Shown here: one piece after another, positions 2,478 to 62,800 of the stretch
How positions within the stretch are numbered: the first letter of the stretch is position 1
Layout: every line of letters begins with the position of its first letter
Assembly: GCA_002269645.1 (NCBI GenBank)
Contig: NIVC01000341.1
Span: 1 to 64,000, forward strand
Direction of reading: 5' to 3'
Source: Macrostomum lignano
Taxonomy: Eukaryota
DNA length: 64,000 nt
Notes under the pieces: generated by a model
The model's input: the letters and a program-made list of their open reading frames with translations, nothing else
Told to the model about the DNA's origin: nothing
Database searches by the model: none
Position numbers and translations under genes: made by a program

Positions 2478-3112
2478 CCCCTCTCGTCTATTGCGTCCCT
2501 CTCGTGTATATTATGGCGCCCCTCTCGTGTATATTATGGCGCCCCTCTCGTGTATATTATGTCGCCCCTCTCGTGTATATTATGGCGCCCCTCTCGTGTA
2601 TATTATGTCGCCCCTCTCGTGTATATTATGGCGCCCCTCTCGTGTATATTATGTCGCCCCTCTCGTGTATATTATGGCGCCCCTCTCGTGTATATTATGG
2701 CCCCTCTCGTGTATATTATGTCGCCCCTCTCGTGTATATTATGGCGCCCCTCTCGTGTATATTATGTCGTCCCTCTCGTGTATATTATGGCGCCCCTCTC
2801 GTGTATATTATGGCGCCCCTCTCGTGTATATTATGTCGTCCCTCTCGTGTATATTATGGCCCCTCTCGTGTATATTATGGCGCCCCTCTCGTGTATATTA
2901 TGGCGTCCCTCTCGTGTATATTATGGCGTCCCTCTCGTGTATATTATGGCGTCCCCTCGTGTATATTATGGCGCCCCTCTCGTGTATATTATGGCGTCCC
3001 CTCGTGTATATTATGGCGTCCCCTCGTGTATATTATGGCGTCCCCTCGTGTATATTATGGCGTCCCCTCTCGTGTATATTATGGCGCCCCTCTCGTGTAT
3101 ATTATGGCGCCC
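2478..3112. repeat. 23-bp minisatellite (cgcccctctcgtgtatattatgg)n, ~27 copies
   Basis: Directly visible tandem array with minor variants. Confidence 0.95.
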
Positions 3113-4483
3113 CCGCTCTTATGTTTAAAATCGGCCCCCTCGTTTTATATTTCGAAATCCGCCACTGACGCGTTTACTTCAAACCGATGGAGTTCTAACC
3201 TTTTTTTCATTTAAAAAAGCACACTGACAGTTTAAACCGAAAGAAAGCTGGGGCTATTATTAGCCATTAGCACGCGAGCTGCGAATGCCGCTATGTGAGT
3301 GTCTGCGGAGTGAGATGCGGATGGGGGGTCATTATTATTTCAAGCAACCTCCCAGCCTCCGAGGTTGTTAAGATTATAAATTGCACTAGAGGGGCGTTAC
3401 TGTCTCGAGAACTTCTATTGAAGTGGTATAGGACCGGAAAATAACGAGTGGAAAAAAACAATGAGAGCTTGTCTGAGGGCTCGGACATTGAGTAGTTTAA
3501 AACAGCCGAGTGGGCAGGAGGACGGCAATTAAATTCTCTTGTATTCGCTCGCGCGTGTTCTCTCAACGGTGCAGGGACGTCTAAATTTATATAGACGTCT
3601 GGATAGATAATTGACTGGCTCCGTCTGCAACAGGGCAACCATGTAGATACTGTCACCCCCCCCCCCCACCCAAAAATATCCCCCAGCTAAAGGTAGATGT
3701 GTAGGCCATTAATCCATCTAAGGCAGCTGATGGCAATGTAAACTGGCTAGTTAAAATTTTGTCGAGGTTTGATGCTTGTAAAAAACTCTTTTACCAGTCC
3801 AGATACTGTTTTCAGGACTCCCCTGTCGCTATTTTTTATGCAGTTATGAACTTTCTTTCCTCAACAGGTATATGGCGCCATTTTCTTACGGAAGGTGATA
3901 TAGAATTAGCACACACGGAGTTGGTAGCCAAGGTGCGGGTGAGGCTGCTACCCCCCCCCCCCCCAACCCCAAAGAGCAATTACAGCTTCTTAACGATGCG
4001 TTGCCATTAGAAACAACGGCTTCATTATGCTTTGCTCAAACCCCTCTATAGACGATACTTACGAATTTTATTGTTTTTTTCTGTCACCCGTTCGGGTTAA
4101 GCTATACAGAGAAACAAGCATGCAATGACAAGCTATTTTTAATGAAGAGTGTCATTTCATTAGTTACGAAAACCTTAGGTGCTACCTTAGCTAATGACGA
4201 ATCGACTCAATAGAGCTGGACAACCTGTGGATTATAACATTAATTACCAATCAAAAATTGTTTGTACAGCGGCTTCCACTCTTGTTTGTTTATTTCAAAT
4301 ATGACAGCGGCTGAACAGTGGCACTGGTTCAGGTTGATTCGGAATGAACTATGAGAAGGAACTATGAGAAAGTCAGGTAAATGCGCCAACGTGTCAGTTG
4401 AATGTGAAGCTCTGTCAGTCGGGTGAGGCCCTTTGTAAGTTAAGTTGAGTTGAATGTGGTCAGTATCATTGGCGCGTGGTGCG

Positions 4484-8400: not shown

Positions 8401-11400
8401 CACCAGTAGTTCTGGTTCGTTCTCTCCAGAATCATGCTGTGTCCCGCTCCTTGCACAGTACTCTTGATTAAGGAGCCACTCTGGCGTCTGTCGAACATGA
8501 TGTTGCGCAACCGCCAGCGCATGCTCCACACCGAGTAGCCGGCATCGCAGTAATCCACGAGTTGGCCGTCCTTCTTCCAGTGTACCTTGAGCTTGTAGCA
8601 ACATCTTGGCGCAGCGTAGAACTGACACCGCATGAAACGGTTGCAGTACCAGTTCCACCACGGATAAGGACATACTGGCGGATTTGTAAAGTTCTGCACG
8701 CACTCAAATCTGCCTCGGAAGCACATGGTGAGCTTATAGTTTCCTTTCTCGTTCTGGTTTTTCTTGTCGCAAGAGTACTCATATGGCCAGTAGCGCCAGT
8801 CCAACACCGCTTGGCGCATGTCTCGAGGGCAAGTGCGGCAGCTCAACTTCGTCGTAAGAGGTCGTTTGCGCTCGTTGTCCATCCATTTTTTGCACTTGAG
8901 CTTGTCGCTAGGAGGAATGGAGTCCGCCATTATCCTTACGTGTCTTCCGACTTTTCCGACATTTCCCATGACCTTATTGTCGGTGACATAATTGCTGCGC
9001 CACCAGTAGTAGCTAAAGGGCAACCTGTCGAATTTCTGGTAACCGTCAGTGAAGCCTGCCGCGACGTAGAAGTACCGCCAGCGCCACTCGCTCATCTCGA
9101 ACTGTCCGTAGTTAAAGATGACGAAGGAGTGGCTCTCGTTTCTGGTGACGATTGCTTGGAAGCTGATGTGCTGCGGGAGTTTGCAGGAGTTTGATTCTGC
9201 TTAATAAAATTTAAAATTTCTATTGCAAGGCACCCAACATAATACGGTACATTTACTTTTCTACCTACGCAGTAGAACCTACACTGTTGCCTACCCATAT
9301 TAAAACGATGGCGAGGCATATATTATGCAAGACTGAAGGGCCTGTCTTACCTCCTGCTTGGGGTCGCAGTACTTGCAGTAGTATTGAGCCCAGCTGTACC
9401 CCAGCTGTTTATAGTAGTAGTTGCAGTAGCGATTACAGTAGTAAACGTAGTAGCTGTACGGCTGCATCTTATTCCAGGTGACGATGAGTGCATTCAGCGG
9501 ATTGTAGGTATCGCCTCCGCTGAAGCTGGTAATAATTTCCACAACCTTTTTCCAGTTCTGCGTGTTACTGTGCTGTGAGCTGTCCAGCAACTCGTAGTAG
9601 ACGGCGGAGTCTGGGTAGGCGAACGAATACCGGTAGGACCAATAGGGAAACACCATCGGCTTCACCAGGTAGGTGTACCAGGTAGGCCAGGTCAGCTGGT
9701 ACGGTGGATCCGAAAAGGACAGGTAGCCGTCTTTAGAAATCTGTATTAATTTCGTGTGGATTGCATAAATTAGCTAGCAAAATGGTTCGATTTGAATAGT
9801 CGAACAAGTTAATGGCTTGAGTCTGCATACCTTGCATACGGTGCTCTCTTGTGATCCGATGATGAACGGAGCTTCAGTTTCAATTGTAACGTAGCTGACT
9901 GTGTAGTTGTTGAAGTCGTATGTCGTCAGCTTTGTGCCATTGTCAGTGGAAAGAGTCATCAGTTCTGTAAGTCGGAAAATTTGACAAATTTACGGTTTTT
10001 TCGGGTACAGAACTTACAGTGTTATTCGGATTTTTTAATTGCGTATTTTTGTCTTACCAATGCAAGTGTATCCGTCGCCATAGTAACCAGGGCGACAGGC
10101 GCAAGAAAATGAGCCCGGATTGTTGCTGCAGATGGCGTTGACGTGACAAGGCGAACTGCTGCACTCGTCAATGTCTGCAATAGGGATTGTAGTTTGCTTT
10201 CAATTTCTAGGAAGTCTGATAGATTGACAATTTTAATATTTGCTTTTGTTAATATGGTATTTATATTGCATACAGAAAACCCAGACCGAGAAAGAAAATG
10301 CATACAAAAATATTACCTGTGTTGCAGTCGATGCCTGACCAGCCAGAGGGGCAAACGCACTGAAATGCATTCACTCGGTCAATGCAACTGCCTCTAAAGC
10401 AAGGCATTTGTGCGCAGTCATCGGTATCTATAAATATTGAATCAAGTAAGGTTGGCAAATATGGTTCCATATGTTGCTTGAATAGGCGTGACTTATTTGA
10501 AAATAACATAAATCAATTAAACTTACTGATTTCGCAAAGAGATCCTTGGTACCCAGGCAAGCAACTACATGTAAAGTACGTTTCTGTAGTGTGACAAGTG
10601 GCCCCATTTTTACATGGCGCACTGTTGCACAGCTTCGACGCGTCAACGATAACACTGCCGCTACTAGTAGTGCCAACAACAACTGGTGGCAGCGTAGTGA
10701 CACCTGCTACAGTAGACTGGGGAGCCGCACTCGATGGCTGATTAGCAGTGGACTGAGGAGCAGCGGTGGACTGAGGATCAGAACTGGACTGAGGAGCAGC
10801 GGTAGACTGGGGATCAGAACTGGACTGAGGAGCAGCGGTAGACTGGGGATCAGAACTGGACTGAGGAGCAGCAGTGGACTGAGGAGCAGCGGTGGACTGG
10901 GGATCAGAACTGGATTGAGGAGCAGCAGTGGATTGAGGAGCAGCAGTGGATTGAACATCAGAAGTTGATGATGGATAAGACTGCGGTTCGGCAGTGCTCG
11001 GCTGAGGTCCAGTCGAAGGCGGATCAGACTGCGGTTCGGCAGTGCTCGGCTGAGGTCCCGTCGAAGTCGGATCAGACTGCGGTTCGGCAGTGCTCGGCTG
11101 AGGTCCCGTCGAAGTCGGATCAGACTGCTGTTCAGCAGTGCTCGGCTGAGGTCCCGTCGAAGGCGGATCAGACTGCGGTTCGGCAGTGCTCGGCTGAGGT
11201 CCAGTCGGAGTCGGATCAGACTGCGGTTCGGCAGTGCTCGGCTGAGGTCCAGTCGGAGTCGGATCAGACTGCGGTTCGGCAGTGCTCGGCTGAGGCCCCG
11301 TCGAAGGCGGATCAGACTGCGGTTCGGCAGTGCTCGGCTGAGGCCCCGTCGAAGGCGGATCAGACTGCGGTTCGGCAGTGCTCGGCTGAGGTCCCGTCGA

Positions 11401-14059
11401 AGTCGGATCAGACTGCGGTTCGGCAGTGCTCGGCTGAGGTCCCGTCGAAGGCAGATCAGACTGCGGTTCGGCAGTGCTCGGCTGAGGTCCCGTCGAAGTC
11501 GGATCAGACTGCGGTTCGGCAGTGCTCGGCTGAGGTCCCGTCGAAGGCGGATCAGACTGCAGTTCGGCAGTGCTCGGCTGAGGTCCCGTCGAAGGCGGAT
11601 CAGACTGCGGTTCGGCAGTGCTCGGCTGAGGTCCCGTCGAAGTCGGATCAGACTGCGGTTCGGCAGTGCTCGGCTGAGGTCCAGTCGAAGGCGGATCAGA
11701 CTGCGGTTCGGCAGTGCTCGGCTGAGGTCCCGTCGAAGGCGGATCAGACTGCAGTTCAGCAGTGCTCGGCTGAGGTCCCGTCGAAGGCGGATCAGACTGC
11801 GGTTCGGCAGTGCTCGGCTGAGGTCCCGTCGAAGTCGGATACGACTGCGGTTCGGCAGTGCTCGGCTGAGGTCCCGTCGAAGGCGGATCAGACTGCTGTT
11901 CAGCAGTGCTCGGCTGAGGTCCCGTCGAAGTCGGATCAGACTGCGGTTCGGCAGTGCTCGGCTGAGGTCCCGTCGAAGTCGGATCAGACTGCGGTTCGGC
12001 AGTGCTCGGCTGAGGTCCAGTCGGGGTCGGATCAGACTGCGGTTCGGCAGTGCTCGGCTGGGGTCCAGTCGGGGTCGGATCAGACTGCGGTTCGGCAGTG
12101 CTCGGCTGAGGTCCAGTCGGAGTCGTATCAGACTGCGGTTCGGCAGTGCTCGGCTGAGGTCCCGTCGAAGGCAGATCAGACTGCGGTTCGGCAGTGCTCG
12201 GCTGAGGTCCCGTCGAAGTCGGATCAGACTGCGGTTCGGCAGTGCTCGGCTGAGGTCCCGTCGAAGGCGGATCAGACTGCAGTTCAGCAGTGCTCGGCTG
12301 AGGTCCCGTCGAAGGCGGATCAGACTGCTGTTCAGCAGTGCTCGGCTGAGGTCCCGTCGAAGTCGGATCAGACTGCGGTTCGGCAGTGCTCGGCTGAGGT
12401 CCCGTCGAAGTCGGATCAGACTGCGGTTCGGCAGTGCTCGGCTGAGGTCCCGTCGAAGTCGGATACGACTGCGGTTCGGCAGTGCTCGGCTGAGGTCCCG
12501 TCGAAGTCGGATCAGACTGCGGTTCGGCAGTGCTCGGCTGAGGTCCCGTCGAAGTCGGATCAGACTGCGGTTCGGCAGTGCTCGGCTGAGGTCCCGTCGA
12601 AGGCGGATCAGACTGCGGTTCGGCAGTGCTCGGCTGAGGTCCCGTCGAAGGCGGATCAGACTGCGGTTCGGCAGTGCTCGGCTGAGGTCCCGTCGAAGGC
12701 AGATCAGACTGCGGTTCGGCAGTGCTCGGCTGAGGTCCCGTCGAAGGCGGATCAGACTGCGGTTCGGCAGTGCTCGGCTGAGGTCCCGTCGAAGGCGGAT
12801 CAGACTGCTGTTCGGCAGTGCTCGGCTGAGGTCCCGTCGAAGTCGGATACGACTGCGGTTCGGCAGTGCTCGGCTGAGGTCCCGTCGAAGGCGGATCAGA
12901 CTGCTGTTCAGCAGTGCTCGGCTGAGGTCCCGTCGAAGTCGGATACGACTGCGGTTCGGCAGTGCTCGGCTGAGGTCCCGTCGAAGGCGGATCAGACTGC
13001 GGTTCGGCAGTGCTCGGCTGAGGTCCCGTCGAAGGCGGATCAGACTGCGGTTCGGCAGTGCTCGGCTGAGGTCCCGTCGAAGGCGGATCAGTCTGCGGTT
13101 CGGCAGTGCTCGGCTGAGGTCCCGTCGAAGTCGGATCAGACTGCGGTTCGGCAGTGCTCGGCTGAGGTCCCGTCGAAGGCGGATCAGACTGCGGTTCGGC
13201 AGTGCTCGGCTGAGGTCCCGTCGAAGGCGGATCAGACTGCGGTTCGGCAGTGCTCGGCTGAGGTCCCGTCGACGGATAAGCAGTGTTCTGTATGTCAATT
13301 GTTGACTCTACGACGCCATTCGATTCTGTTGTTGCAGGTGCAACAATTGCTGTTTGGGATACATTGGGGATACAGTTAGGATACCTTGTAAGAATTTAAC
13401 AGGATGCAGGCATTCAAAATATTTACAACTTAACAACATTAAAAATTGTTTTACGTTTTTTAAGCATAAGCCCGTGTCTATTTGCTTTATAATTTAAAAA
13501 GGTAGTTGGAACCCACTCTTAGCTTTTTTTCATGGGAGTTGGTCCGTAAAATTCGATTTCTCGGAAAGATAATTCATTCTGATGCGGCGTCGTTTTTGAT
13601 CTGCTCATGTTTAAACGAATTTAATAACGAGCAGCATATTGGGAGCTTAGGTATTACGCGTTTAATTGTGACTTACTTTTCGTCTTGGCTCTACTCCAGG
13701 AGCGTAGCAAGAAAGTTTCTCCGGGAGGGGGGATAAATTACTTTCACAGCGGACATTTATATTTTATACAGTATACCTATAGAGAACCATACTTCAAAAA
13801 AATCTTAGGCTATTCGGGGGGGATACTATATGCTATGCCCTATGCCACTGCTATGCTCGATCGTATTTGCATGTATAAGGAACGAAATGATTTCCTGGAA
13901 CAAATGAAATGTGGTTCATTCATATTGTGGTAGAATATTATTGAGGCTCCTGGGTGTCTGACAACAGCAGTACTGGTAACGATGCAGAATAAATAACTTA
14001 CGAAGCACTAAGCTAACGATAGCTGCAATAGCCAGTAGACGCCATGCAGCGTTCTGCAT
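5415..14059 (-). CDS. MUC4-like type I transmembrane mucin (signal peptide, PTS repeats, 3 EGF, NIDO, AMOP-like, vWD with GDPH, further EGF/cbEGF, TM), ~2176 aa, 13 exons
   Basis: GT-AG exons with consistent phases: 14059-14002, 13349-10527, 10427-10317, 10174-10058, 9964-9831, 9740-9351, 9170-8267, 8181-7427, 7343-6887, 6781-6596, 6465-6203, 6033-5841, 5554-5415 (6531 nt). Motifs: signal [19 protein letters not shown]; DIDEC/DTNEC/DINEC cbEGF starts; NIDO-like [22 protein letters not shown]; AMOP-like CKKW...[14 protein letters not shown]; [17 protein letters not shown]; [27 protein letters not shown]. Confidence 0.9.
10977..13272 (-). repeat. Coding 48-bp tandem repeat encoding [15 protein letters not shown](P/T), ~48 copies (mucin domain)
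   Basis: This frame links the signal-peptide exon to the downstream QSTAAP repeats and the EGF motif [12 protein letters not shown]. The ORF track shows only the two wrong frames. Confidence 0.9.
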
Positions 14060-16567: not shown

Positions 16568-35456
<18,889 letters not shown>

Positions 35457-36748
35457 GAATTCAGTTATACAGACTAATTAAAAAAGGTAATGTTAATATG
35501 AATAATTATATTAATAGACTATATATGTGTATGTAGGTAGGCCTAGGCGTTTTGATTTTGAAAGACGAAATGTCGAATGACGCAGTTAGTCTTGATATTA
35601 GTGCTAGAAAAACTAACAAAACATTAATAGTAGCCTTGGGAGCAATTTACAAAAATATTATTTGTTCTATCTATGATGCGCAATGCCGTAATAAGTAGAG
35701 CTAAGCCTACAGATACACAAGCAAAATCAATTACCTAATTCATTCAATCTCTTCATTCTAAAAAGAAAACATTTTCTGTTTTTAAATTGGAAAATAAAGA
35801 TCAGCTGTTTTTCTCTATATTTTGGAAGGTGTCGTTAAAAACGAAATGTCCAACTACGCGGGAGGGTAATGTTAGAAAACATGCTGATGCTCCCTTAAGC
35901 AAACAAGGATCTTAAGCTGAACTTAATTTTTTCTACATTTAGGAATGTTAAATATCTTTTTTGTCTATGTTTTAATGTTTCTGGTGATTTTCTTAGTTAT
36001 TATCCCAGCTCATACATAAAAAATAATTAATTTGCTTCAAAATGTTCTTCGCGATTATGAGCTACCTGAGATTATCCTTGAGCTACCCAGTAACTTCTGC
36101 GAAGCTTACCATGCTGCTCAATCGTCTTTGATTTGCCTGACCGAATTGCGTAAGCAGGATGTGAAACAAAAGCAACCTACGGGTACTAAATATCACTTTA
36201 AAGCTAAACCCAAAATCAGTTGCATCAAAAGAAATTTAATTTAATCACTTCCGTTTGCTTTTCCTTGTCTCGTTCCCTTGACATCGTAAAGTGGATACGT
36301 CTAAAAATAAGAATTAATTAGGAGTAATTTTTTATGACAAAACATCTAATTACTGCATTACGTGATTCGTGCTTCTTCACATCCTACGATCGTAAATACA
36401 TGTACGTGTAGAACATGTAGAATCAGTAGTACACTGGAAGAGGTTAGCATCCTCTGCTATACATGTACGAGCTATATACAGGTTTATCAAAATGAAGCAC
36501 AAAAGGGGAACCTTGTAAGTACGTTACGTACAATTTTGAAAATAAAGGCAAGACCTTTGAAGAATCGAATTTACACGTATAGTTAAGTTACGATCGCATC
36601 TTTTATTTGCTCGGCACAAGTTACAGCCTACTTTTTACAGCTGTACAAGTAAACACGGCAAATATAAGATAATCAAAATACGCAAATTAATGTACTCGAA
36701 TATGAATCGAAGTAGCTATAATATTTTAATGCACAATGAAAAACGGTT

Positions 36749-37469
36749 TTACGCCCAGTCAGTGGACCCTCCTCCTCTACGCGACACCTTGTCCATCGAT
36801 CGGCGACTTTTACCGGCTAGCCGACGCTCCGTTGCAAGCTGACGGCGCCGGGCTAGCGCCGCTGACACCTCAGGTGATGGCGGCGGCCGCGGCCGCAAGG
36901 CAGCTTCAGCTTGGCGAATAAATGTGCGAAGTTTGTCCAGACAGTCGGTCTGGTTAAGCACCTGGCGTTTGGTTCGCTCCGAGGTCACTATGAGCCAGTC
37001 GGATTTGTTGACTCGGCTGGCCTAGTTTAATTATGAGTATAAATTCATTGTAAAAATAAGAGTATGCATATTTACAACCAAATGTACGACGTAAGGTTAA
37101 GACGATTAATATTTTATTTAAGACGACTGCTCCCATTCTGAGACAACTAATAACCCTGCTCACCTGCATCGACCTAATTTGAGCTTTCACCGGTTCGCTA
37201 ATAAAAGTTGCGCTACTCAAGTGCAGTCGCACTTCAACTTTACTCTGCGTCTTGTTGACATGCTGACCGCCCGGCCCACCGGAAGTCATATGACTCACTC
37301 GCACCTGTTCCATAGGAATTATGCCATTAAATTTGTCATTTTCAACGCGATCATCGTTGTCACCTTCTCGACTGCAGAGGCGTCGGCAGAGACTGCGCAG
37401 CGGAATAGCTGGCACAATGGCGCCGCCACGCACTAGAGCTGAGGCTAATGTCAGGTTAATGAGGCCAGG
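36749..37469 (-). CDS. MRPL58: Mitochondrial peptidyl-tRNA hydrolase ICT1 / ribosomal protein mL62; exons 37469-37164 and 37021-36749
   Basis: GGQ release-factor motif SGGPGGQHVNKTQSKVEVR; second exon ASRVNKSDWLIVTSERTKRQVLNQTDCLDKLR with a basic C-terminal tail; phase-0 GT-AG intron. The 5' start is uncertain (no in-frame ATG upstream). Confidence 0.88.
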
Positions 37470-37589
37470 CTGTGGGATTATTAAGTGCAGTAGTGGATCA
37501 TAACACTGTAACCATTTCCGACGCCGAATGCGGTTAAATTTTATAAAGTTATATTTATCCTCAGTTTGCACGACCCTTTATGGCGAATA

Positions 37590-38240
37590 TACAGGGTTGT
37601 TTGTAGCTAATATGCAGGGTTGTTTACAGAACTTACAGGCCTGTTTATAGCTAATATAGGGTTATTTATAGCTAATATACAGGGCTGATTATAGCTAATA
37701 TACAGGGTTGTTTATAACTAATATACAGCGTTGTTTATAGCTTATATAAAAGGGTTGTTTATAGCTAATATACAGGGTTGTTTATAATATTGCTGTTTAG
37801 TAATAAATTTGTATTAAATTTGTATTAATTAGTTGTTTTAGTTGTAATTAGTTGTAATTATTTGTAATAATTAGTATTAGTATTAGTATTAATTTGTATT
37901 AAATTAAATTTGAGGTGTCTTAAATTTGTTTATAACTAATATACAGGGTTGTTTATAGCTAATATACAGGGTTGTTTATCGCTAATATACAAGGGTTGTT
38001 TATAGCTAATATACAGGGTTGTTTATCGCTAATATACAGGGTTGTTTATCGCTAATATACAGGGTTGTTTATAGCTAATATACAGGGCTGTTTATCGCTA
38101 ATATACAAGGGTTGTTTATAGCTAATATACAGGGTTGTTTATCGCTAATATACAAGGGTTGTTTATCGCTAATATACAGGGTTGTTTATAGCTAATATAC
38201 AGGGTTGTTTATCGCTAATATACAGGGTTGTATAACTAAT
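37590..38240. repeat. ~23-bp minisatellite (tacagggttgtttatagctaata)n, interrupted by an AT-rich tract
   Basis: Visible array upstream of ICT1. Confidence 0.9.
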
Positions 38241-39095
38241 ATACAATTTATAAGGCTAACAAATCTATGAAACTATAACAAATCATATAGTAAACATGCC
38301 GATGATTTTTCAATTCTAATGAGTGTTAGTTGCGATTCTCTTTAGGTCTCTAATATATGTATCAGTTTAGCTAGTATTATTTTTCAGCAATAATAAAACA
38401 AACTAAATAACAAGTTAGCTTTGGAAGCATTCAACAAAACGCAAATTATTAACGCGCTGCCTAGAAGTGGTGGCAGTAAGTCAGCTTTGAGACAACTCGT
38501 CTGTTGTATTAATACTACTAATAGTAAGAGTGCAAAATGGACAGAAAAAACTGGTTTTTATCGAGTCGAGAGTAAAGACAAATCTAAGTTATTTAAGTCT
38601 AAACAATAGTAGATTATATACAAATAAAAAAACGAAAATACACAAAATCTGTTCTGTAGTTCCATTGAAACCAAAATAGAACAAGCATAAGTACAAAAAA
38701 TAGTTGTTTTAAAATATTTATTACATTTAAAAGTGTGGAAAATAGTGCAGCAAATATCGACGATAGAAAGTCTCTATCAAAGTGGGAATGTTACTAAATT
38801 TAAATAAAAAACAGCAAAAAAACATAGCAGACTACTATAATATAAAAATAATTATAGTTACCAGATGTTTATTTACAACAGTGGAAAATTGCACTAATTA
38901 TCGATAGCGATATGACGGAATTGTCGGATTAATATACAGCAATAAGTCAAAACAATCAGAGGACACTACTCAGTAGTAATAAGTCTAGTTTATAAGACAA
39001 CTTGTCATGATAAAACGGTTATTTACATATAAAAAATGATATAAAAATATTCAGCTCCGCTGTAGCAAGTTAATGAATCAGTTAGTGGTGTCAGA

Positions 39096-42000
39096 TCAGA
39101 TCATGGTGTCCCTGTAGGGCGCTAAACGCACAGGCGACACGGCACCCAAACTGAGGCGATGATTCTTTCTATTCCTACTATCCTGATGAGAATTATTGTC
39201 GCCGCTATTGTTCTGATTATTATTCGGCTCCTTGTCGTGATTGTGCCGCCTCGGCACTACGGGTGGTTGCTTGTGACGCGATTGTTGCTGATGCTGCTGA
39301 GAAGGCTGCTGCTCAGTGAAGGTCATTGTGCTCAAATCGACCAGATGCTGTTCCTCATCTTCCTCATCGACGCCAGAGGAGTTGTCGTGTCCTGCACGTG
39401 CAGGAAGTGCAGCAGCAACGGTGGCGGCGATGACGACCGACTGCCTGGAGGCGCCGCCGCTCACAATAGACGAGCCGGAAGCGCCGCTGATGACGCAATC
39501 TTCAATTTCGTCTGGTCGCATTGCGAGACTCTCGCGCACCAATCTGTCCATGTCGGCCAGGGCATCCGCGACAGTGCTTGATTGCTGCTGCTGGTGATGA
39601 TGCTTCACAGCATCCGATAGCAGGTGCTGCCAGTCAGACGACCAAACTAGCAGGGCTCCGTGTAGACCGGAGGTGTCATCTGTGACGCCTAAAATGTAAA
39701 GTGACACTACTCAGTGAATCTTAGCAGCCGTTATTTATCAGCACACTTTATTACCAGAAGAAGCTCTGCTTAACTCATCTAAACCACAACAAAAATCGCG
39801 GACTAAAAGAATCACCCTCTAAATTAAAAGAATCACCCTCTAAACTAAAAGAATCACCCTATAAACTAAAAGAATCACCCTATAAACTAAAAGAATCACT
39901 CTCTAAACTAGAAGAATCACTCTCTAAACTAAAAGAATCACCCTCTAAACTAAAAGAATCACCCTATAAACTAAAAAAATCACCCTCTAAATTAAAAGAA
40001 TTACTCTCTAAACTAAAAGAATCACCCTCTAAACTAAAAGAATCACCCCTAAACTAAAAGAATCAACCTCTTAACTAAAAGAATCACTCTCCAAACTAGA
40101 AGAATCACTCTCTAAACTAAAAGAATCACCCTCTAAACTAAAAGAATCACTCTCTAAACTAAAAGAATCACCCTCTAAACTAAAAGAATCACTCTCTAAA
40201 CTAAAAGAATCACTCTCTAAACTAAAAGAATCACCCTCTAAATTAAAAGAATCACCCTATAAACTAAAAGAATCACTCTCTAAACTAGAAGAATCACTCT
40301 CTAAACTAAAAGAATCACCCTTTAAACTAAAAGAATCACCCTCTAAACTAAAATGAATCACTCTCTAAACTAAAAGAATCACTCTCTAAACTAAAATAAT
40401 CACTCTCTAAACTAAAAGAATCACCCTCTAAACCAGAAGAATCACCCTCTAAACTAAAAGAATCACTCTCTAAACTAAAAGAATTGCCCTCTAAACTAAA
40501 AGAATCACCCTCTAAACTAAAAGAATCGCCCTCTAAACTAAAAGATTAAAAGAAAAACGCCTAAAAATACATCTCCATCTATAGAAAGGGAAGCCAGCAC
40601 ACAGCACACACCAGGCTTGGCAACGCAGCCAACGGCAGACGCCAGCCATTGGGCCAAATTGGCATTGGACCAGAACAACAGAGGTATGGCGGCCCAGGCA
40701 CGGCTCCGCAGGCGCTCCAACGAGTCCCAGTCGCAGCGCAGGCGACGCAGCAGTTCAACGCCCATCAGCAGACTTCGTCGATGCCGCCGACGGCTCAAGC
40801 CAAACGCGTACTGCTGATCAAGCTTAGCCAATTGGCGCTTGTCCAAGGACAACAGTCTGGACAGATCAATGCCGGCGGATTGGAAAGCCGCACTAAACTG
40901 TCGCAGGCCAAGCGACGGCAGGAATTGTTCCGCAATCCAGACGGCTGAACCGATCGATGGAGACGGCTGCTGCTGTTGTTGGCCGCCAGCTGTGTGCTCC
41001 GGACCGGATGCGCTGCTTTCGGCGGCGCTGACATTGCCAATGCTCAGCTTCATCAACGACAATGTTGACGATGGCATCGCTTGAGAAGTGAAAAATCCCG
41101 GTTCGGTTTGGGTTGACAATGAGACGGTCGAACCAGATGAAAATTGCTGCTGTTGCTGCTGCTGTTGTTGCAGACTCTGCACTCGTTTGCGCTGCTTGTT
41201 TAATTGACGATGGAGCTTTGCTACCTGTGAATGTAATGAGGATTTCTTGTTAATCGGTTCACCTGGTATGAGATACATAAACCGAGTGGGAGGGAAAGCT
41301 CAGTGTGAGGTGAGGGAGTGGCAGCTTAGTGTGAGGTGAGGGAGTGGCAGCTCAGTGTGAGGTGAGGGAGTGGCAGCTCAGTGTGAGGTGAGGGAGTGGC
41401 AGCTCAGTGTGAGGTGAGGGAGTGGCAGCTCAGTGTGAGGTGAGGGAGTGGCAGCTCAGTGTGAGGTGAGGGAGTGGCAGCTCAGTGTGAGGTGAGGGAG
41501 TGGCAGCTCAGTGTGAGGTGAGGGAGTGGCAGCTCAGTGTGAGGTGAGGGAGTGGCAGCTCAGTGTGAGGTGAGGGAGTGGCAGCTCAGTGTGAGGTGAG
41601 GGAGTGGCAGCTCAGTGTGAGGTGAGGGAGTGGCAGCTCAGTGTGAGGTGAGGGAGTGGCAGCTCAGTGTGAGGTGAGGGAGTGGCAGCTCAGTGTGAGA
41701 TGAGGGAGTGGCAGCTGAGTGTGAGGTGAGGGAGTGGCAGCTCAGTGTGAGGTGAGGGAGTGGCAGCTCAGTGTGAGGTGAGGGAGTGGCAGCTCAGTGT
41801 GAGGTGAGGGAGTGGCAGCTCAGTGTGAGATGAGGGAGTGGCAGCTCAGTGTGAGGTGAGGGAGTGGCAGCTCAGTGTGAGGTGAGGGAGTGGCAGCTCA
41901 GTGTGAGGTGAGGGAGTGGCAGCTCAGTGTGAGGTGAGGGAGTGGCAGCTCAGTGTGAGGTGAGGGAGTGGCAGCTTAGTGTGAGGTGAGGGAGTGGCAG

Positions 42001-43579: not shown

Positions 43580-46500
43580 TTGAAGCACCTGCTAGACGCT
43601 GGCCTGACTCACCTGGTGACCCATGAGATCATCCTGAAGGATCGGACACCAGTTGCGCTACCACCGCACAGGATCCCGCCTCATCTGAAGGACAAGCTAG
43701 ACGCCCTGCTAGACGAGATGCTGGCGAAGCACATCATTCGCCCAGCTTATTCTAGCTACAACTTGCTAATGCTGATAGTGCCCAAGAAGGACGGCAACAT
43801 CAGGCTGGTGCATGACTTCAGAGCTCTCAACGACAAGTGCGTGTACTACCCATACCTGCTGCCGCACATTCAGGAGACCTTCGTGAAGCTGCGTGGTGCC
43901 CAGTGGTACTCTAGCTTGGATCTTGCTCAAGGATTCTGGCAGATCCCGCTGCGCGACTGCGATCAGCACCTGACGGCGTTCTCTGTGATTGACCGCGGAC
44001 AATTCTGTTTCAATGTTCTACCGATGGGTCTCCACGATAGTCCCGCAGCTTTCAGCGTTGCATCAATAAGCTCCTGGACGGCCTGATGCCAAAGACTGCG
44101 CTTGGCTACATGGATGACATCGTGGTGCACTCAGTGACCTTCGAGGAGGAGGAGCTGGACAACCTGCGGACTGTACTCCAGCGGATTATTGCATCCAACC
44201 TCAGGTTCAAGCCAAAAAAGTGCCATTTGTTCCCCAAAGAGCTGCATTATCTAGGTCACGTCGTGACTCCCGACGGCCTGAAGACCTGTGAGGACAAGAT
44301 TGCGCAGATCCGTGATTGGCCCGTGCCACAGTCCGTTACTCAACTGAGACAATTCCTAGGCCTCGCTAACTACTACCACAAGTTTGTCAACGGCTACGCT
44401 GGATTTGCTGCCCCGCTGCATGCCCTGACTCGAAAGGACATTGGCAGCCTGCGGCAGCATTGGACTGATGAGCACCAGGTAGCGTTCGACACGTTGAAGA
44501 AGAAGTTGTGTTCGACTGAAGTTCTTGCTCTGTCTGAGTTTAACTCAGATCCTGATGTGAAGTTTGCCCAAGACACTGATGTCTCAGACATTTGCATAGG
44601 CGCTTGTCTTATACAACAGCAATCTGACGGCGTCGACCGCCCAGTTGCATTCTTTAGCCGGAAACTTCGTGATCCTAAGAAGCGCTACACGGTCACGAAG
44701 AAAGAGCTGCTTGCAATCGTGGACGCGATGCGACATTTCCGTCATTATTTAATCGGCAAGGAATTTGAGGTTCGTTCTGACCATCGGGCCTTGCTGTGGC
44801 TGTTAACCAGACGCAGGTCACAGGCATCTTGGGCTGTTGGATTGAGCGACTGAGCGAGTTCCGCTTCCAGCTTCACCATCGCAAAGGCAAGGACCACGCC
44901 AACGCCGACGCCTTGTCAAGACGGCCGGAGACACCACCGGTTGACTTTGAGCACTGCCGACTGCTTGAGCATCCCGGTTCTGCAGCCCGACCCGGTGATG
45001 ACACCAGCCTGGAGCCGGACTTGGACACCACACGTGAGGCCACTGCAAGAGCAGCCCTCTCGAAGAAGGTCCACATTCGCAAAGTGGAGGCCGAAACTGC
45101 CCTGGCCAAAGACCTGGAGGCCGCTGCGCCAGCAGCCCTTCAGCACGACGACCATTGCTGCAGTCAACGCCTGGAGACCAGTCTGGACACCAACCCGGAG
45201 GCCACTGATACCTCAGCCCTCCGCAGAGATGCCCATTCTGACTGTCGTTACTTGGGGATTCGCCCGGACAAGACCTCGGAGGCCACTGCTCGTGAATTCA
45301 GACCAGCAATGTAAATTCAACCCCCCGGAGTTTTGCGCTGAGAGTTCTTGTCGTGTTGACAGAGGCCAGACTCTCGCGACGGCTGCAAGGTCAACGCTCT
45401 GTCCCCCGAGCCGACAGACAGCTGCTAATCGCCTGCGTGGAAAGTTGAGTCCCCCTTTGCGACACCGCCCAGTGCTGGAGAAGACTCACCCAATGTCGAT
45501 GATGAACAAGCCGACGGCTACGGCTGCCTGCGACGAGGCGTGCTTCACGTGTTGCATCTTGCCCTACAGTCAAGAGTCGCCTGGGCTGTGCAGTGGAGGC
45601 AAGTGAACTGCTCCAGCTGCGGAAATTCCTGTCAAGAGAGCGACGATGAGAACTTCAAAACGAGATCAGCGATCATACGCCGACGTTGTGAGCCCCTCGG
45701 AGTGACCTAATCCTGACGCCGACAAGACGGAGTCGTGTGATCAACTGCGAGCCAAAGAAGCGGAGACTGCGGGAGTCATGAACCCTCAGCCATGCCGCGC
45801 CGTGCTCACTGATTTCCTGAGGTCACCGATGACGCGGCAACAGTTTTTCGACGCGCAGCGCGCCGACCAAGCAATCAGTTATGTGCTCAACTTGGTCGAG
45901 AACAAAGCCCCGAAGCCTGAGTTCGACGCCCGGTTGCGACTAACGAAGGAGCAGCGGAACCTGCTCGGTTATTACGAGAATCTGCGAGAGGACAACGGCC
46001 TGCTGCTGATCGATCTGACCAACGCCAGGCTGTCCTGCCCGATGCTCTCGATGCCCAGGTGCTCCAGGAGCTCCACAGTTCGCCACTGTGTGGCTTGACG
46101 CTGTGCGACGCGACGTCGAAGTACCCGTTTGCCTATCCTATGAGGAACCAGAAAGCCAAGACGGTCATCAAGATCCTGCAGGAGCGCTTGATCCCTGACT
46201 TTGGTGTACCTTGCTGGATACACACTGATCAAGGAACCAACTTCACTGGCTCAGCTCTGCGACCTGTTTGGCATCCGGCATACAACCACAACGCCGTACA
46301 ATCCAGCTTCTAACGGGCAAGTAGAGAACCTCAACAAGTAGTTGAAGAGTGTCCCCACCTGCCTCCTCGAGCACAACCATAATGACTGGGACACCTTTCT
46401 CCCAGCCTGTCTGATGGCTCTCCGCTCTAGTGTACACCCGGTGACAGGCTTCACGCACCACTACCTGGTGTTTGGTCGAGACTTCCGACTTCCAATCGAC

Positions 46501-47031
46501 AACGCGATCAAGAAGCTGCCCGAGTATGCCGATCTGCCAGACTACATCAAGGACTTCCAGCGCCGCTTAGACGAAGAGACTGAGCTAGCCAAAGAACGCC
46601 TGCATCTGCATCAGCAGCTGCGCGACGAGCACTATTTGAACCTGCCCGCAGCCAAGAAGCTCAAACCTGGCGACCTGGTTTTCCTCAACAACCCGCTGCT
46701 CGAACCGGATGAAGCGGCAAAGTTCCAAAGTTCCAAAGGCAAAGTCGTCTACAAGATTCGCCGTACACTACCAAACCTGCGGGCCAGGCGTGACGAGCTA
46801 ATTGTCCATCGCCAGAATTTGCTGCTCGTGCCTGATGCCGACTATCAGCTGACTTCGGAGCCGGAGGTCGACAAGGCCAAGAAGCGCCGCAGGTCGACCG
46901 ACGTCCTGGATGGTGCAGGACCCGCGACCCTGACACCAATCCTGGAGGATGACGATGATAATGACGCGTGTCCGGCCTTTCCGATGGCACTTCCGGCCGT
47001 TGGCGATCCCAGATGTGCGGTCAGGAGGTGA
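43580..47031 (+). pseudogene. Gypsy pol pseudogene (RT, RNase H, integrase) with frameshifts and deletions
   Basis: RT: KKDGNIRLVHDFRALN, LDLAQGFWQI, YMDDIVV. RNase H: DTDVSDICIGACL, YTVTKKELLAIV, DHRALLWL, HANADALSR. Integrase: HTDQGTNFT, NGQVE. The HHCC region and first catalytic Asp appear deleted near 46090. Confidence 0.92.
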
Positions 47032-56778: not shown

Positions 56779-58117
56779 ATGGCTGGATTGGCTCCCAGAG
56801 GCTCAACCAGTGCTGGCAATGCCGACGCCTTGGACAGCCAGGCCACTGATGCCGCACTGTGGCCCCTAGTTGACGAAATCATTGACGATTTGGCTATGGA
56901 AGTGATCTTCTCCAGTCATATGGAGGCTAAAATGGGCGTGCTATTCCTGCACGAGGAGCTGCTGGCTGATGAGCACGTTGCCACGGGGGGTCGGCTTGGC
57001 AGCCACATTGCTGGCGGCATTGCCGGCCTTGTCGGCGGCGAGAGGTCGGGTAGCGACTCGGAACCGCCGATGTTTGGTTAGTTTCGCAAGAGTTAAACGC
57101 GTTTGCATTAATTTAGCATTTGTCGCCTGTAAGAGCCTGTAAATCCTGCGTGAGCCGTTTGACTGTCTAAACAGTAGTAATACACGTAAGTTGCACTTAC
57201 TACTGTTAGACACCTCAGCTGTCTTTAGTTTTTCTATACTGAACACTTCTCGCAAGTTATGTGCGTGTAAGTAGAGTGTTTAGTAACATATTTATTATAA
57301 ATAGGGTTCCTGTTAGAATGTACGCATTAGGCTACTTCGTAATTATAGTAAGTAGTGTAGTTATAATTTTTACACTATAAATGTTATTAAACTACTATTT
57401 GTAAGTATTGCAGTTTGAGTCTTTCTGGTATATTTATTATCAGATAGAGGATAGGTTTTAGTCTAGTGGTTAGAGTGTCAGACTCGCGACTAAAAGGTCG
57501 GGGGTTCGATTCTCAACATAACCCGTAACAATATGTGTCCTTGAGCAGGACACTCAACTCTGCACTGCTTCAGTTCACCCAGCTGTAGAATGGGCTCTTA
57601 TTAAGTTTTTTTCCTAACGCAAATTCGCACAGGAGGCCAGCCAGCCGCCAAGCTCAAGCCGGTGATGTGCCGCTGCCCGAATTGCAATCGGAGTATGGCC
57701 GCGCTAAGATTTGCGCCCCATCTAGAGAAATGCATGGGCATGGGCCGGGTTAGCAGCCGGGTGGCCTCGCGTAGAATAGCCATACAGCATCGGTATAGCG
57801 ACGACTCCGATAGCGACGATCAGCATCATCATCCGCCGCCGATGAAGCAGCGCCGTTCAATGAAACGCGTGTCCACGGCGCCTGGCAACGTTGTGAACCA
57901 GCCGTCTGGCCGGTCAGCTGTGCCGCCGCCGCCGCCGTTTGTGCCCGTTGTGCCGCCGCATTCTCAAGACGACGATTGGGACGGTTTGAGCACGCCGTCG
58001 CCTTCCAGCGCTAGCACCGGAAGCTCCAGCGGAAATAGCGGCGGCGGCGGCGGTGGAGGCGTCGGAAATGCCTGCTTAGCCAAGACCGCTTTGTACCATC
58101 ATTCGTCTAGGCGTTGA
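56779..58117 (+). CDS. ATXN7L3: SAGA deubiquitination-module subunit Sgf11 / ataxin-7-like 3; exons 56779-57076 and 57633-58117
   Basis: Sgf11 zinc finger [38 protein letters not shown]; N-terminal helix [18 protein letters not shown]; phase-1 GT-AG intron. Confidence 0.92.
57448..57596 (+). mobile_element. tRNA-derived SINE in the SGF11 intron
   Basis: A-box tagtctagtggttag, B-box ggttcgattc, then a central-domain-like tgtgtccttgagcaggacactcaac...cacccagctgtagaatggg. Confidence 0.75.
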
Positions 58118-58424
58118 GACGTGGTTTCTGGTTTTATTTTGAGATGCTTTCAAATGATGAATATCATCCTTATCCTAGTGACTTGAGACTATCTGAGTAG
58201 ATTCAACAAATATATACAGTTAACCAAGTGGATAATTTATTTATTTTTTGCATTTTTGCATGTGGGGGATTTTCTTGTGTTTGTTTAAAAAACAATGGAT
58301 TCTAGATTGAATGCTCTTATTATTGTACTAATTTCATTCTTCATGCTAATTTTATTGTGAATTAGGCATATGCTCTTATTTAGAATTGAATCCCCACATA
58401 GTCACACGGGACACCAGATCCCCA

Positions 58425-59245
58425 TACCCACACTCAGATCCCCATACACTACACTCAGAACCCCATACATCACACTCAGATCCCAATACACCACACTCAA
58501 ATACCAATACACCACACTCAGATCTCAGTACACCACACTCAGATCCCCATACACCACACTCAAATACCAATACACCACACTCAGGTCCCCATACACCACA
58601 CTCAGATCCCCATACACCACACTCAGGTCCCTATTCACCACACTCAGGTCCCAATAAACCACACTCAGAGCCCATACACCACACTCAGATCCCAATACAC
58701 CACACTCAAATACCAATACACCACACTCAGATCTCAGTACACCACACTCAGGTCCCCATACACCACACTCAGATCCCCATACACCACACTCAGGTCCCTA
58801 TTCACCACACTCAGGTCCCAATACACCACACTCAGAGCCCATACACCATACTCAGATCCCAATACACCACACTCAGATCCCCATACACCACACTCAGATC
58901 CCAATACACCACACTCAAATACCAATACACCACACTCAGATCTCAGTACACCACACTCAGATCCCCATACACCACACTCAGATCCCCATACACCACACTC
59001 AAATACCAATACACCACACTCAGATCTCAGTACACCACACTCAGATCCCCATACACCACACTCAGATCCCAAACACCATACTCAGATCCCAATACACCAC
59101 ACTCAGATCCCCATACACCACACTCAGATCCCCATACACCACACTCAGATACCAATACACCACACTCAGATCTCAGTACACCACACTCAGATCCCCATAC
59201 TCCACACTCAGATCCCAGTATACCACACTCAGATCCCCATACACC
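58425..59245. repeat. 21-bp minisatellite (cacactcagatccccatacac)n, ~39 copies
   Basis: Visible array downstream of SGF11. Confidence 0.95.
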
Positions 59246-59859
59246 CGTAATGTCTATTGAACGTTAAATTACCATACTGATTTAACCAAGAATTTCTGTA
59301 AATAAAAATGCGTATTTGATCATCAAATTCTGCTTTTTTAATTTAATTTCAAACGTTAGTTAGTACAATTAGAAAAACAGTATTCATGACGACAAATATG
59401 GCAGTAAATCACCTCATTTCCAGCTGTTACAGCTGAATGAGTTGACTGCAAAACTTACTAAATATGAAATACTACTCATGTTTTTCTGCGATCAAACCAG
59501 GCCACCTTGTTAATTAAGCTGTAACCGCCACCGGGTCACGGATCAGATGGAGCGTTTAAGATCTGTACAGCATATTATTGCATATCTGTACTCAAAAACT
59601 CTAATCACGAGTGGGAATTTCTTGTAACTGAGCAATCACCAATGCAAAACTAAAAAGACTTCGTAATCATGCGTTGAGATTCCTTCTACTTCTAATGTTG
59701 TTTTTTTGCACTTGTTGCGCGCGTTTTTTAAGTTTAGCGCGTGAAGCTCAGAAATTTCATTTGATAAATTGTTTACTATCAAATTTTATATTTGTGTTAC
59801 TCTGCCCGTTGTGTTCTTGTGGGACAGGGCAAGACTTGTTAGCGACAGCTTCTCAACTC

Positions 59860-62800
59860 ATTCTGCTAGCAGAAGTAGCATCGCATTTAAACTCCTGATG
59901 TCCCTGTCGACGGCCTCTCTTTGAGGTTATGGCCGGCATTTTGACTCCATTTTTTATCGTGCTTTGATGAGTAGATCTACCACCTCGTAATGGCCATTTT
60001 GTGATTCTTGTCACCATTTGTGCCATTTTTGCTCTTTGAAACTAAAATTTTTGTTGTAATTATTTTCTTATAAATAGTGTGGGATAACAGTAATTTTGTT
60101 TTTCTTGTCAGGGTCGGCGGCATCTTTGAAGTGTGCCGTCTCGCTGACACCTGTTTCACAGTTGCACAGCCTGGCCACTACTTGCAAGTGTCCTTTCTCT
60201 GCTGCCTTCACTGCGGTGTGGGAGCATGGAGAAGCTGCTTAAGTTTGTCAGCTCTCATTCAAACTAAAATCTGAAACCGTGTGTAATATGTTTTGCTTTT
60301 GCATCTTATCCATCTCAATCATTGCTGTTGAACAAAATTCTTTGTTTGTCTCACTGTTCTCAGTGAGAATTCGTGGGACATCCAAGTGGGATCTATCACT
60401 GTGCTTTGATGCGACAACTTTCTCACGTGGTGTGCTCACGGCAGTAACACGGGCTGTTGCTGCAATTGATGTCTCTGACGCCATTCAGCACTCTGCCACC
60501 AAATTGACTTTATTGATTTATTGTGCTTTGATCAGCCTGCTCACGACTTTATGATGACCATTCTGTGCTTCTCATCCTGTGCTAGGCTAGCTGCTTTGCA
60601 GATGGGATGGGAGGCGCAGAAACGTAAAAGTGCTGGTTTTACTATTGCAAGAATAAAAAGTGTGGGATAAAAGTAATTTTGTTCACTTCGATGTGTGCCG
60701 GTTCTCGGACACTTGTTGCACTGTTGTGGATGTTGAGAAGCGGCAGCTTTTTATCTCATTCTGTTAGCAGAAGTAGCATTATATTTGAGCTCTTGATGTC
60801 CCTGTCGGCGGCCTCTCCGAGGTTTTGGCCGGCACTTTTACTCCATTATTCATTGTGCTTTGATGAGTAGATCTACCACCTCATGATGGCCATTTTGTGA
60901 TTCTTGTCTCATTTTTGCTATTTGAGTTTCTGAAGTTAACAGTTCTTTTAATTAGTATTGTATTTATAAGTAGTGTGGGATAAAAGTACTTTGTTTTGAT
61001 TTTATGCCAGAGTCAGCAGCATCTTTTTGTGTGCAGTCTTTCTCAATATCCTAAGGACTGACCTTTGGCCCTCACCTGTTCGTAAGAACATTAAAAAGCC
61101 GTTTCATCCCTACAGACTGCAGCCCTCCTGTTGGTTCCCATGTGCAGTTGCATTGCGGTGTGCCTCTGCGGTCTGGTCTCTGTTCCATTCCTGCCGTTGC
61201 TGAGTCTGAATGGCCGTTTCATTGCGGTGTGCCTCTGCGGTCTGGTCTCTGTTCCATTCCTGCCGTTGCTGAGTCTGAATGGCCGTTTCATTGCGGTGTG
61301 CCTCTGCGGTCTGGTCTCTGTTCCATTCCTGCCGTTGCTGAGTCTGAATGGCCGTTTCATTGCGGTGTGCCTCTGCGGTCTGGTCTCTGTTCCATTCCTG
61401 CAGTTGCTGTGTCTGAATGGCCGTTTCATTGCGGTGTGCCTCTGCGGTCTGGTCTCTGTTCCATTCCTGCCGTTGCTGAGTCTGAATGGCCGTTTCATTG
61501 CGGTGTGCCTCTGCGGTCTGGTCTCTGTTCCATTCCTGCCGTTGCTGAGTCTGAATGGCCGTTTCATTGCGGTGTGCCTCTGCGGTCTGGTCTCTGTTCC
61601 ATTCCTGCCGTTGCTGAGTCTGAATGGCCGTTTCATTGCGGTGTGCCTCTGCGGTCTGGTCTCTGTTCCATTCCTGCCGTTGCTGAGTCTGAATGGCCGT
61701 TTCATTGCGGTGTGCCTCTGCGGTCTGGTCTCTGTTCCATTCCTGCCGTTGCTGAGTCTGAATGGCCGTTTCATTGCGGTGTGCCTCTGCGGTCTGGTCT
61801 CTGTTCCATTCCTGCCGTTGCTGAGTCTGAATGGCCGTTTCATTGCGGTGTGCCTCTGCGGTCTGGTCTCTGTTCCATTCCTGCCGTTGCTGAGTCTGAA
61901 TGGCCGTTTCATTGCGGTGTGCCTCTGCGGTCTGGTCTCTGTTCCATTCCTGCAGTTGCTGTGTCTGAATGGCCGTTTCATTGCGGTGTGCCTCTGCGGT
62001 CTGGTCTCTGTTCCATTCCTGCAGTTGCTGTGTCTGAATGGCCGTTTCATTGCGGTGTGCCTCTGCGGTCTGGTCTCTGTTCCATTCCTGCAGTTGCTGT
62101 GTCTGAATGGCCGTTTCATTGCGGTGTGCCTCTGCGGTCTGGTCTCTGTTCCATTCCTGCCGTTGCTGAGTCTGAATGGCCGTTTCATTGCGGTGTGCCT
62201 CTGCGGTCTGGTCTCTGTTCCATTCCTGCCGTTGCTGAGTCTGAATGGCCGTTTCATTGCGGTGTGCCTCTGCGGTCTGGTCTCTGTTCCATTCCTGCAG
62301 TTGCTGTGTCTGAATGGCCGTTTCATTGCGGTGTGCCTCTGCGGTCTGGTCTCTGTTCCATTCCTGCAGTTGCTGTGTCTGAATGGCCGTTTCATTGCGG
62401 TGTGCCTCTGCGGTCTGGTCTCTGTTCCATTCCTGCAGTTGCTGTGTCTGAATGGCCGTTTCATTGCGGTGTGCCTCTGCGGTCTGGTCTCTGTACGACC
62501 GAATACGCTTTTCTTTGGAATCATTTAAATGCTCTAATTACTATTATAGTTATAAATAGTGTGGGATAAAAGTACTATTGTTCATTTTTATGTCGATATC
62601 TCTTTGATGTGTACCGATTCTGTGGTACCTGTTGCACATTTGCACAGCCTGGCTACAACTTGCAAGTGTCCTTTCTATGCTGCACTGCGGTGTGGGAGCA
62701 TGAAGAAACTGCTTGAGTCTTGAAACACCCGTGTGTTTTGAGTCTATAAAACTCTTGCGCTACAATTTTATCAGAAATTCAAACATTTTTTGTAATTTTT

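Follow-up and report, generated by a model that had tools for sequence, protein, structure and literature searches.

An ICT1/mL62 gene copy of Macrostomum lignano that lacks its own start codon most likely takes its AUG from the trans-spliced leader

The spliced leaders (SLs) reported from flatworms all end in ATG, and in Schistosoma the AUG of the SL was shown experimentally to serve as initiator Met (Cheng et al., 2006, a result taken up in PMC12582326 and in PMC9851317). Macrostomum lignano possesses a single SL of 35 nt, CGGTCTCTTACTGCGAAGACTCAATTTATTGCATG, which has ATG at its 3' end (PMC8629364), and trans-splicing affects 30-39% of its genes, conserved ones being over-represented (PMC8629364, PMC5730564). 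The trans-splice acceptors of this species are enriched for the motif [T/C]TNCAG, while its cis-splice donors follow the consensus GT[G/A]AG, which is found at 65% of them (PMC8629364). In the M. lignano literature that we searched, no discussion of the SL AUG as initiator was found. Since the mechanism as such has been known in flatworms since 2006, the gene described below would be a new example and not a new principle, and the general biological surprise is small.

The stretch of DNA that we analysed, here called the window, is 64,000 nt long and corresponds to NIVC01000341.1:1-64000 of the M. lignano assembly GCA_002269645.1 (Mlig_3_7), window and contig coordinates being the same. The initial annotation of this stretch, which was made from its letters, had supposed a flatworm with trans-splicing and had left room for an organism without an AUG-terminated SL; the taxon is now fixed as M. 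lignano, in which SL trans-splicing is documented and the SL ends in ATG. Our analysis suggests that the ICT1 copy in this window, which lacks a genomic start codon before its conserved domain, most likely receives its AUG from the trans-spliced leader. The features on which the argument draws are the following.

37164 to 37469, minus strand: coding exon 1 of ICT1/mL62 (PGLINL...IRSMQ), with the presequence-like N-terminus and the GGQ motif.
37022 to 37163, minus strand: cis intron of 142 nt, GTGAGC...CTAG, GC 31%, with a donor that fits the published GT[G/A]AG consensus.
36749 to 37021, minus strand: coding exon 2 of ICT1/mL62, which encodes the basic C-terminal tail and ends in the stop TAA (36751-36749).
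36602 to 36730, minus strand: candidate ICT1 poly(A) signals, ATTAAA at 36730-36725 and AATAAA at 36607-36602, recognised by pattern only.
37472 to 37574, minus strand: putative outron, AT-rich (GC 37%), without an in-frame ATG, the frame being open from the stop at 37574-37572.
37311 to 37313, minus strand: first genomic in-frame ATG (Met of IIPMEQ, residue 54 of the M-prefixed protein), within the conserved region.
37470 to 37471, minus strand: proposed SL trans-splice acceptor A2, cccacAG|CCTGGC, where joining would put the SL AUG in frame before Pro-Gly-Leu.
37506 to 37507, minus strand: alternative in-frame acceptor A1, ggTTACAG|TGT, which fits [T/C]TNCAG perfectly and would give M-CYDPLLHLIIPQ-PGL...
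37511 to 37515, minus strand: out-of-frame ATG followed by GT, a candidate one-codon exon end before a 43-nt cis intron (37512..37470) with the non-consensus donor GTTAC.
37577 to 38245, minus strand: 23-nt tandem array between the 3' end of the upstream gene and ICT1, with a copy number that differs between the two assembly copies.

The minus-strand gene has two exons (37469..37164 and 37021..36749), and the joined exons translate into a protein with 100% identity to GenBank PAA56680.1/PAA85195.1 ('hypothetical protein BOX15_Mlig016451g4, partial'). The protein matches PF00472 (RF-1 domain), carries the GGQ motif as SGGPGGQHVNK together with a basic C-terminal tail, and aligns with the porcine and human mitoribosomal ICT1 of PDB structures at E=1.7e-24 over residues 36-185 (HMMER). 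Its score against NCBIfam ArfB is 72 bits, which lies under the 100-bit cut-off for bacterial equivalogs, as expected for a eukaryotic homologue. Judged by these matches, the gene encodes ICT1/mL62, a mitochondrial ribosome rescue factor of the ArfB-like mitochondrial peptidyl-tRNA hydrolase family.

As the initial annotation had pointed out, the reading frame of exon 1 is open far upstream without offering an ATG. The minus-strand ORF 36954..37571 directly follows the stop at 37574-37572, the sole 'start' at its upstream end is a GTG at 37571, and no Met precedes ...GIIPMEQ, the first Met codon being the one at 37313-37311. Counted on the M-prefixed protein, the alignment with the solved mammalian ICT1 structures sets in at residues 36-49 and so before Met54 (HMMER), and in the orthologue from Owenia DKYSGSVPIDKV aligns with DKFNGIIPMEQV; this homology places the true start upstream of Met54. 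Translation from the internal Met, or from a near-cognate codon such as CUG or GUG in an unspliced leader, would leave the protein with no N-terminus or a different one. It could draw on the fact that this is the first genomic in-frame ATG and on out-of-frame AGs within exon 1 (e.g. ctctgcAG at 37373-37372) at which the SL could in principle be added, so that Met54 would be the first AUG in frame. However, the residues homologous to mammalian ICT1 and the entire presequence of a mitoribosomal protein would then be lost, the GC content and the open frame favour 37469-37314 as coding sequence, and the ATG has a C at -3, so that we regard initiation at these codons as extremely improbable.

Base composition points to where the exon begins. 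Between 37469 and the internal Met the sequence has a GC content of 52%, as has the remainder of exon 1; the value is 37% in the 102 nt before this segment (37571-37470) and 31% in the intron, and the step from 37% to 52% at 37469 therefore suggests that ICT1 exon 1 starts at or very near this position. Exactly there, as had been proposed before, an acceptor AG (37471-37470) immediately precedes the ICT1 codons CCT GGC, which begin at 37469; the AG is part of a CAG, and 59% of the preceding 17 bases are pyrimidines. We had considered the in-frame position of this AG as evidence for an acceptor and dropped it: from the upstream stop to the internal Met, 3/11 AG dinucleotides lie in the ICT1 frame (37560, 37506 and 37470), close to the third expected by chance, and the position alone is not significant. 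One of them, at 37507-37506 (A1), is a second in-frame acceptor that the initial annotation did not list.

We propose that the 5' part of the ICT1 pre-mRNA, the outron, is removed by SL trans-splicing at the CAG acceptor 37471-37470, so that the 35-nt SL (...UUGCAUG) would be joined to CCUGGC... The end of the SL, TTATTGCATG, would thus meet the start of the exon, CCTGGCCTCATT, in the junction TTTATTGCATGCCTGGCCTCATT, as opposed to the colinear, unspliced run through the acceptor, CCCACAGCCTGG; ATCCCACAGCCTGGCC and ATCCCCATGCCTGGCC likewise represent unspliced or genomic states of the ICT1 junction. The terminal AUG of the SL would then start a precursor of 193 residues, MPGLINLTLASALVRGGAIVPAIPLRSLCRRLCSR..., whose Arg-rich and acid-free N-terminus would serve as mitochondrial presequence. 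By crude metrics, the presequence-like character that had been noted for the stretch after the acceptor holds: the first 35 residues carry a charge of +5/-0, the first acidic residue is at position 36, and the maximum helical hydrophobic moment of the M-prefixed N-terminus is 0.67. The GGQ motif occupies residues 68-70 of the MPGL... protein, residues 55-57 in Owenia and residues 87-89 in human ICT1, and its position in the flatworm protein thus falls between the other two. Two features of the proposed junction are less favourable: CCACAG at A2 lacks the T at -5 of [T/C]TNCAG, to which TTACAG at the upstream A1 conforms perfectly, and the Kozak context of the SL AUG is poor, with U at -3 and C at +4.

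The public gene models are in line with a start that the genome does not encode. The NCBI CDS is flagged 5'-partial and starts at LINL (37463), 6 nt inside exon 1, with no upstream exon and no Met, and the ML2-derived UniProt entry A0A1I8GHF1 (UniRef100, n=2) starts LIIPQPGL, 15 nt upstream of A2, reading through the CAG, again without Met. In the annotation of Mlig_3_7, SL sequences were trimmed before mapping and ORF calling, and an ORF that begins with the SL AUG necessarily emerges from such a procedure as '5'-partial'; the 'partial' database entries of ICT1 would be a consequence of this order of steps. We nevertheless gave up the idea that the 'partial' flag proves a trans-splice boundary: the models of the neighbouring, cis-spliced SAM-domain gene are partial too and merely fragmented, which makes the flag weak evidence for ICT1. 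The protein cluster consists of NCBI and UniRef models only and holds no RNA-derived sequence, the first 32 nt of exon 1 gave no match in a metagenome scan, and neither a full-text search with the gene id nor a search of the PMC5816591 supplement found anything.

Similar truncations occur at other genes of the region. The SAM-domain gene (window 43365-39096, L003 4099-8368) is annotated as two partial CDSs of 52 aa and 394 aa, the ends of which fall 21-75 nt inside exons; a consensus donor, CAG|GTGAGA (L003 4330, phase 0), joins its exon 1 in frame to a CACAG acceptor at L003 6239|6240, so that the two CDSs probably belong to one gene. An AMMECR1-like gene (PLFVTWK... motif) at L004 12765-14453, homologous to window ~18900-17286 on the minus strand, has an annotated 5'-partial CDS that begins 4 nt after the AG acceptor of an apparent internal exon, and is thus a further example of a model cut off shortly after the exon border.

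The ICT1 protein is encoded a second time in the assembly, on NIVC01002591.1. Over 1.6 kb (window 38087-36488), which include the whole gene and 600 nt upstream, the two copies are identical except at one place, and this place is the proposed junction: CCCACAG|CCTGGC in the window corresponds to CCCCATG|CCTGGC in the second copy, a change of ACAG to CATG that creates a genomic in-frame ATG exactly at the predicted position of the SL AUG. The three changed bases (-4, -3 and -2: C, A and T) copy the terminal CATG of the SL, while position -5 stays genomic. The CATG state is represented by the k-mer CCCCATGCCTGG.

This difference between the copies bears on the choice of acceptor. The SL might be added at the in-frame A1 (TTACAG|TGT, 37507-37506), alone or in alternation with A2, in which case TTGCATG would be joined to TGTTATGATCC (junction k-mer TTTATTGCATGTGTTATGATCC) and the precursor, MCYDPLLHLIIPQPGLINL..., would be 12 residues longer. 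A1 is a perfect [T/C]TNCAG in frame with ICT1, and the ML2-based UniProt model extends into the interval between the two acceptors. On the other hand, the 36 nt from A1 to A2 have a GC content of ~39% by hand count, like the surrounding putative outron (37%), the additional peptide would introduce an Asp at position 4 and lower the charge of the first 35 residues to +1/-1, the NCBI model starts at A2+6, away from A1, and the CATG difference sits at A2, A1 being the same in both copies. Use of A1 is therefore in our view quite improbable.

Ordinary cis-splicing would provide the same protein without any SL. If transcription started upstream of 37515, the ATG at 37515-37513 could end a tiny exon and removal of a 43-nt intron (37512..37470) would yield MPGLINL... 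through the junction GGAAATG|CCTGGC (k-mer CGGAAATGCCTGGCCTC). The initial annotation had named this as one of the findings that would refute its proposal. The sequence elements do exist: the out-of-frame ATG is followed by GT, the arrangement ATG|GT...AG|CCT restores the frame, and the ATG-GT is kept in both assembly copies. Yet the donor GTTAC misses GT[G/A]AG, the intron is absent from the annotated model, and a canonical GT-AG junction would be called by STAR and would complete the ORF, whereas both public models are without Met. In the second copy, moreover, the acceptor AG is gone, so that the intron could not be spliced there. Taken together, these points make the 43-nt intron very unlikely.

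A further explanation would be an unrecognised cis exon with an ATG, located beyond or inside the tandem array and spliced to 37469, the present models being incomplete. Models of this region are demonstrably fragmented, as in the SAM-domain gene, and candidates with weak donors exist, for example MLPKLTCYL|GTTTGT at 38430-38403. None of the candidates, however, has a consensus donor, and a search for an upstream phase-0 exon of the form ATG...GT[AG]AG found none in 37470-39400. In addition, the sequence after 37469 already resembles the extreme N-terminus of a presequence, the length of the N-terminus lies within the range of the orthologues, and the region in question consists of the 3' UTR of the neighbour and satellite sequence. 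An upstream exon of this kind thus appears very unlikely indeed, and SL addition at A2 remains the reading that we prefer.

The neighbour in question, a same-strand gene with coiled-coil and SAM domains (window ~43365-39096, minus), ends 1.6 kb before the acceptor, has AATAAA at 38873 and 38722 in its 3' region, and is separated from ICT1 by a gap of which ~670 nt are the 23-nt tandem array. Under the 1-kb criterion of PMC8629364, once adjusted for repeats, the two genes could count as an operon; in a check for shared names, the 52-aa upstream fragment carried no transcriptional-unit name in the annotation. A homology search with an exon of the SAM gene returned no matches, probably owing to poly-Q bias. 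The array (window 37577-38245) lies directly upstream of ICT1, has the minus-strand unit AACAACCCTGTATATTAGC[T/G]ATA and contains two more units in the second assembly copy. The 13-nt core of the array, CCCTGTATATTAG, occurs without mismatch within a trematode SL of the Fasciola type, AACCTTAACGGTTCTCTGCCCTGTATATTAGTGCATG (PMC3795323), has the same orientation as ICT1 and is distinct from the M. lignano SL; 13 exact and 6 one-mismatch copies of the core, all within the array, compare with 0.04 expected. The resemblance may be coincidental, or the array may preserve the remnant of an SL-like sequence. A TATA-like TATAAAA lies at 37545-37539 on the minus strand, ~70 nt upstream of the acceptor. 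If it were functional, the outron would be very short (~40-50 nt) and both A1 and the ATG-GT would be too near the cap for use; given the AT-richness of the region, it is likely a chance occurrence.

Other parts of the window hold repeats and mobile elements. On the plus strand at 43580-47031, ORFs with reverse-transcriptase, RNase H and integrase-like sequence (LTR-retrotransposon pol) are broken across several frames, and long, satellite-like tandem arrays at 2233-3214, 10546-13379, 30600-32764, 58386-59267 and 61091-62569 are open in several frames and give rise to spurious ORFs of 200-860 aa. When the two assembly copies are compared, the array at 30.6-32.8 kb shows strong differences in both length and sequence. 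An ORF with an SGF11/ATXN7L3-type zinc-finger motif at 57662-58117 (plus strand) is what we take to be, probably, an exon of a SAGA deubiquitinase-module gene.

What the CATG of the second copy means depends on how it arose. One explanation is that the genomic ATG is functional as it stands in the second copy, with the ACAG of the window being a variant or null allele or an error, and that no SL AUG is needed at all. This would account for an in-frame ATG at the exact position, and the copies do differ more widely by ~0.2-0.3% substitutions and other multi-base changes, which suggests that they are distinct alleles or homeologues. Against it, the CAG state occurs in two independent assemblies, namely the Mlig_3_7 window and the ML2-derived UniRef100 entry (n=2, ...IIPQPGL), while CATG is confined to the error-laden end of one contig in an assembly polished with RNA-seq. 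That all three changed bases copy the SL also speaks against a mutation unrelated to it: with ~3 multi-base events in 8 kb, we roughly estimate the probability of a random event giving CATG at these four bases as ~1e-4 or less. For these reasons we consider it very improbable that a genomic ATG accounts for the start of ICT1.

We believe instead that CATG is probably an imprint of SL-bearing ICT1 RNA reads. The second copy lies 3.7 kb from the contig end of NIVC01002591.1, and Mlig_3_7 was polished by Pilon with RNA-seq. At this end (L004 1-850, window ~41160-40310), where no gene was called, at least five single-base deletions frameshift an exon of the SAM gene that is intact in the window; they bear the signature of uncorrected long-read consensus errors and not of divergence. 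Polishing with DNA was thus evidently poor there, and uncorrected indels combined with RNA-seq polishing lead us to read CATG as a trace of SL-bearing reads. Read in this way, it would testify indirectly, at the level of reads, to joining of the SL at 37470|37469. A simple end-to-end pile-up of reads as the cause is weakened by the borders of the ICT1 cis intron in the second copy, which show no comparable imprint; the handling of mass soft-clipping by Pilon is a possible cause. The other multi-base differences between the copies mean that CATG could be a real allele, which we regard as rather unlikely. Such an allele might represent genomic capture of the 3' end of the SL, for instance by conversion from a reverse-transcribed trans-spliced mRNA, a scenario that we consider improbable. 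Under either origin of CATG, the placement of the initiator Met directly before Pro-Gly-Leu is corroborated.

Searches for the SL elsewhere in the window gave a negative picture. The full SL is absent from the window, there were no Rfam matches, and matches to SL suffixes of 5-8 nt occurred in background-like numbers with none at a convincing gene start; further SL imprints in the window were accordingly dropped.

The earlier suggestion that a trans-spliced leader may supply the missing AUG is thus supported by the taxon, the SL ending, the homology upstream of Met54, the Met-less public models and the CATG of the second copy, with addition of the SL at A2, use of its AUG as start codon and mitochondrial targeting by the resulting N-terminus as the predicted course of events. 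If this is confirmed, an essential and conserved mitochondrial protein, mL62/ICT1, would depend wholly on the SL for its initiator codon and hence for its import presequence, and PAA56680.1, PAA85195.1 and A0A1I8GHF1 would probably not be truly 'partial'. Wherever the SL is trimmed ahead of ORF calling, SL-AUG ORFs would be mis-flagged systematically. If CATG is a polishing imprint, Mlig_3_7 may hold SL-derived false ATGs at other trans-splice sites, which would matter for promoter and reporter design in M. lignano as a transgenic model. Should genomic capture prove true, an SL-dependent start would have turned into a genomic ATG at the identical position, the same protein would be made from two near-identical copies in one animal with the start provided in trans by one and in cis by the other, and the locus would offer a caught-in-the-act view of the gain or loss of SL-AUG dependence.

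Compared with its mammalian counterpart ICT1/mL62 (MRPL58; PDB 4ce4_u, 3j7y_p, 1j26_A), the flatworm protein has the GGQ domain and the basic C-terminal tail in common, and also an N-terminal extension, which is ~20 residues shorter than the mammalian one and contains a putative presequence; the mammalian gene encodes its own ATG, unlike the flatworm copy. With respect to the second copy, the nearest parallel is Mlig013257.g1, a trans-spliced gene with SL sequence in the genome at its 5' end (PMC8629364). In both cases bases that appear to derive from the SL directly precede the first exon in the assembly, but Mlig013257.g1 has the whole SL, whereas at ICT1 no more than its final four bases (CATG) are present, and these in one copy out of two. 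The slORFs identified with slORFfinder (PMC9851317) resemble the proposed situation in that the start codon is supplied in trans and is invisible to genome-based ORF calling; that survey covered nematodes, Oikopleura and trypanosomes by ribosome profiling, with no flatworm data.

The closest match is with the SL-AUG-initiated flatworm mRNAs of the type of Cheng et al. (2006), as portrayed in the papers that cite them. M. lignano differs as a free-living macrostomorph with another 35-nt SL, and at its ICT1 gene SL addition and translation from the SL AUG are what we infer. The likenesses are that the SL ends in AUG, that an acceptor lies in frame directly before codon 2, that the recipient gene has no AUG upstream of its conserved coding region and that trimming of the SL in annotation leaves a '5'-partial' ORF. 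Five features define this type: two of them, an SL joined at the acceptor and initiation at its AUG, are predictions for ICT1, and the other three, namely an SL that ends in AUG, an acceptor in frame and the lack of a genomic AUG that could give the full-length protein, are present in M. lignano.
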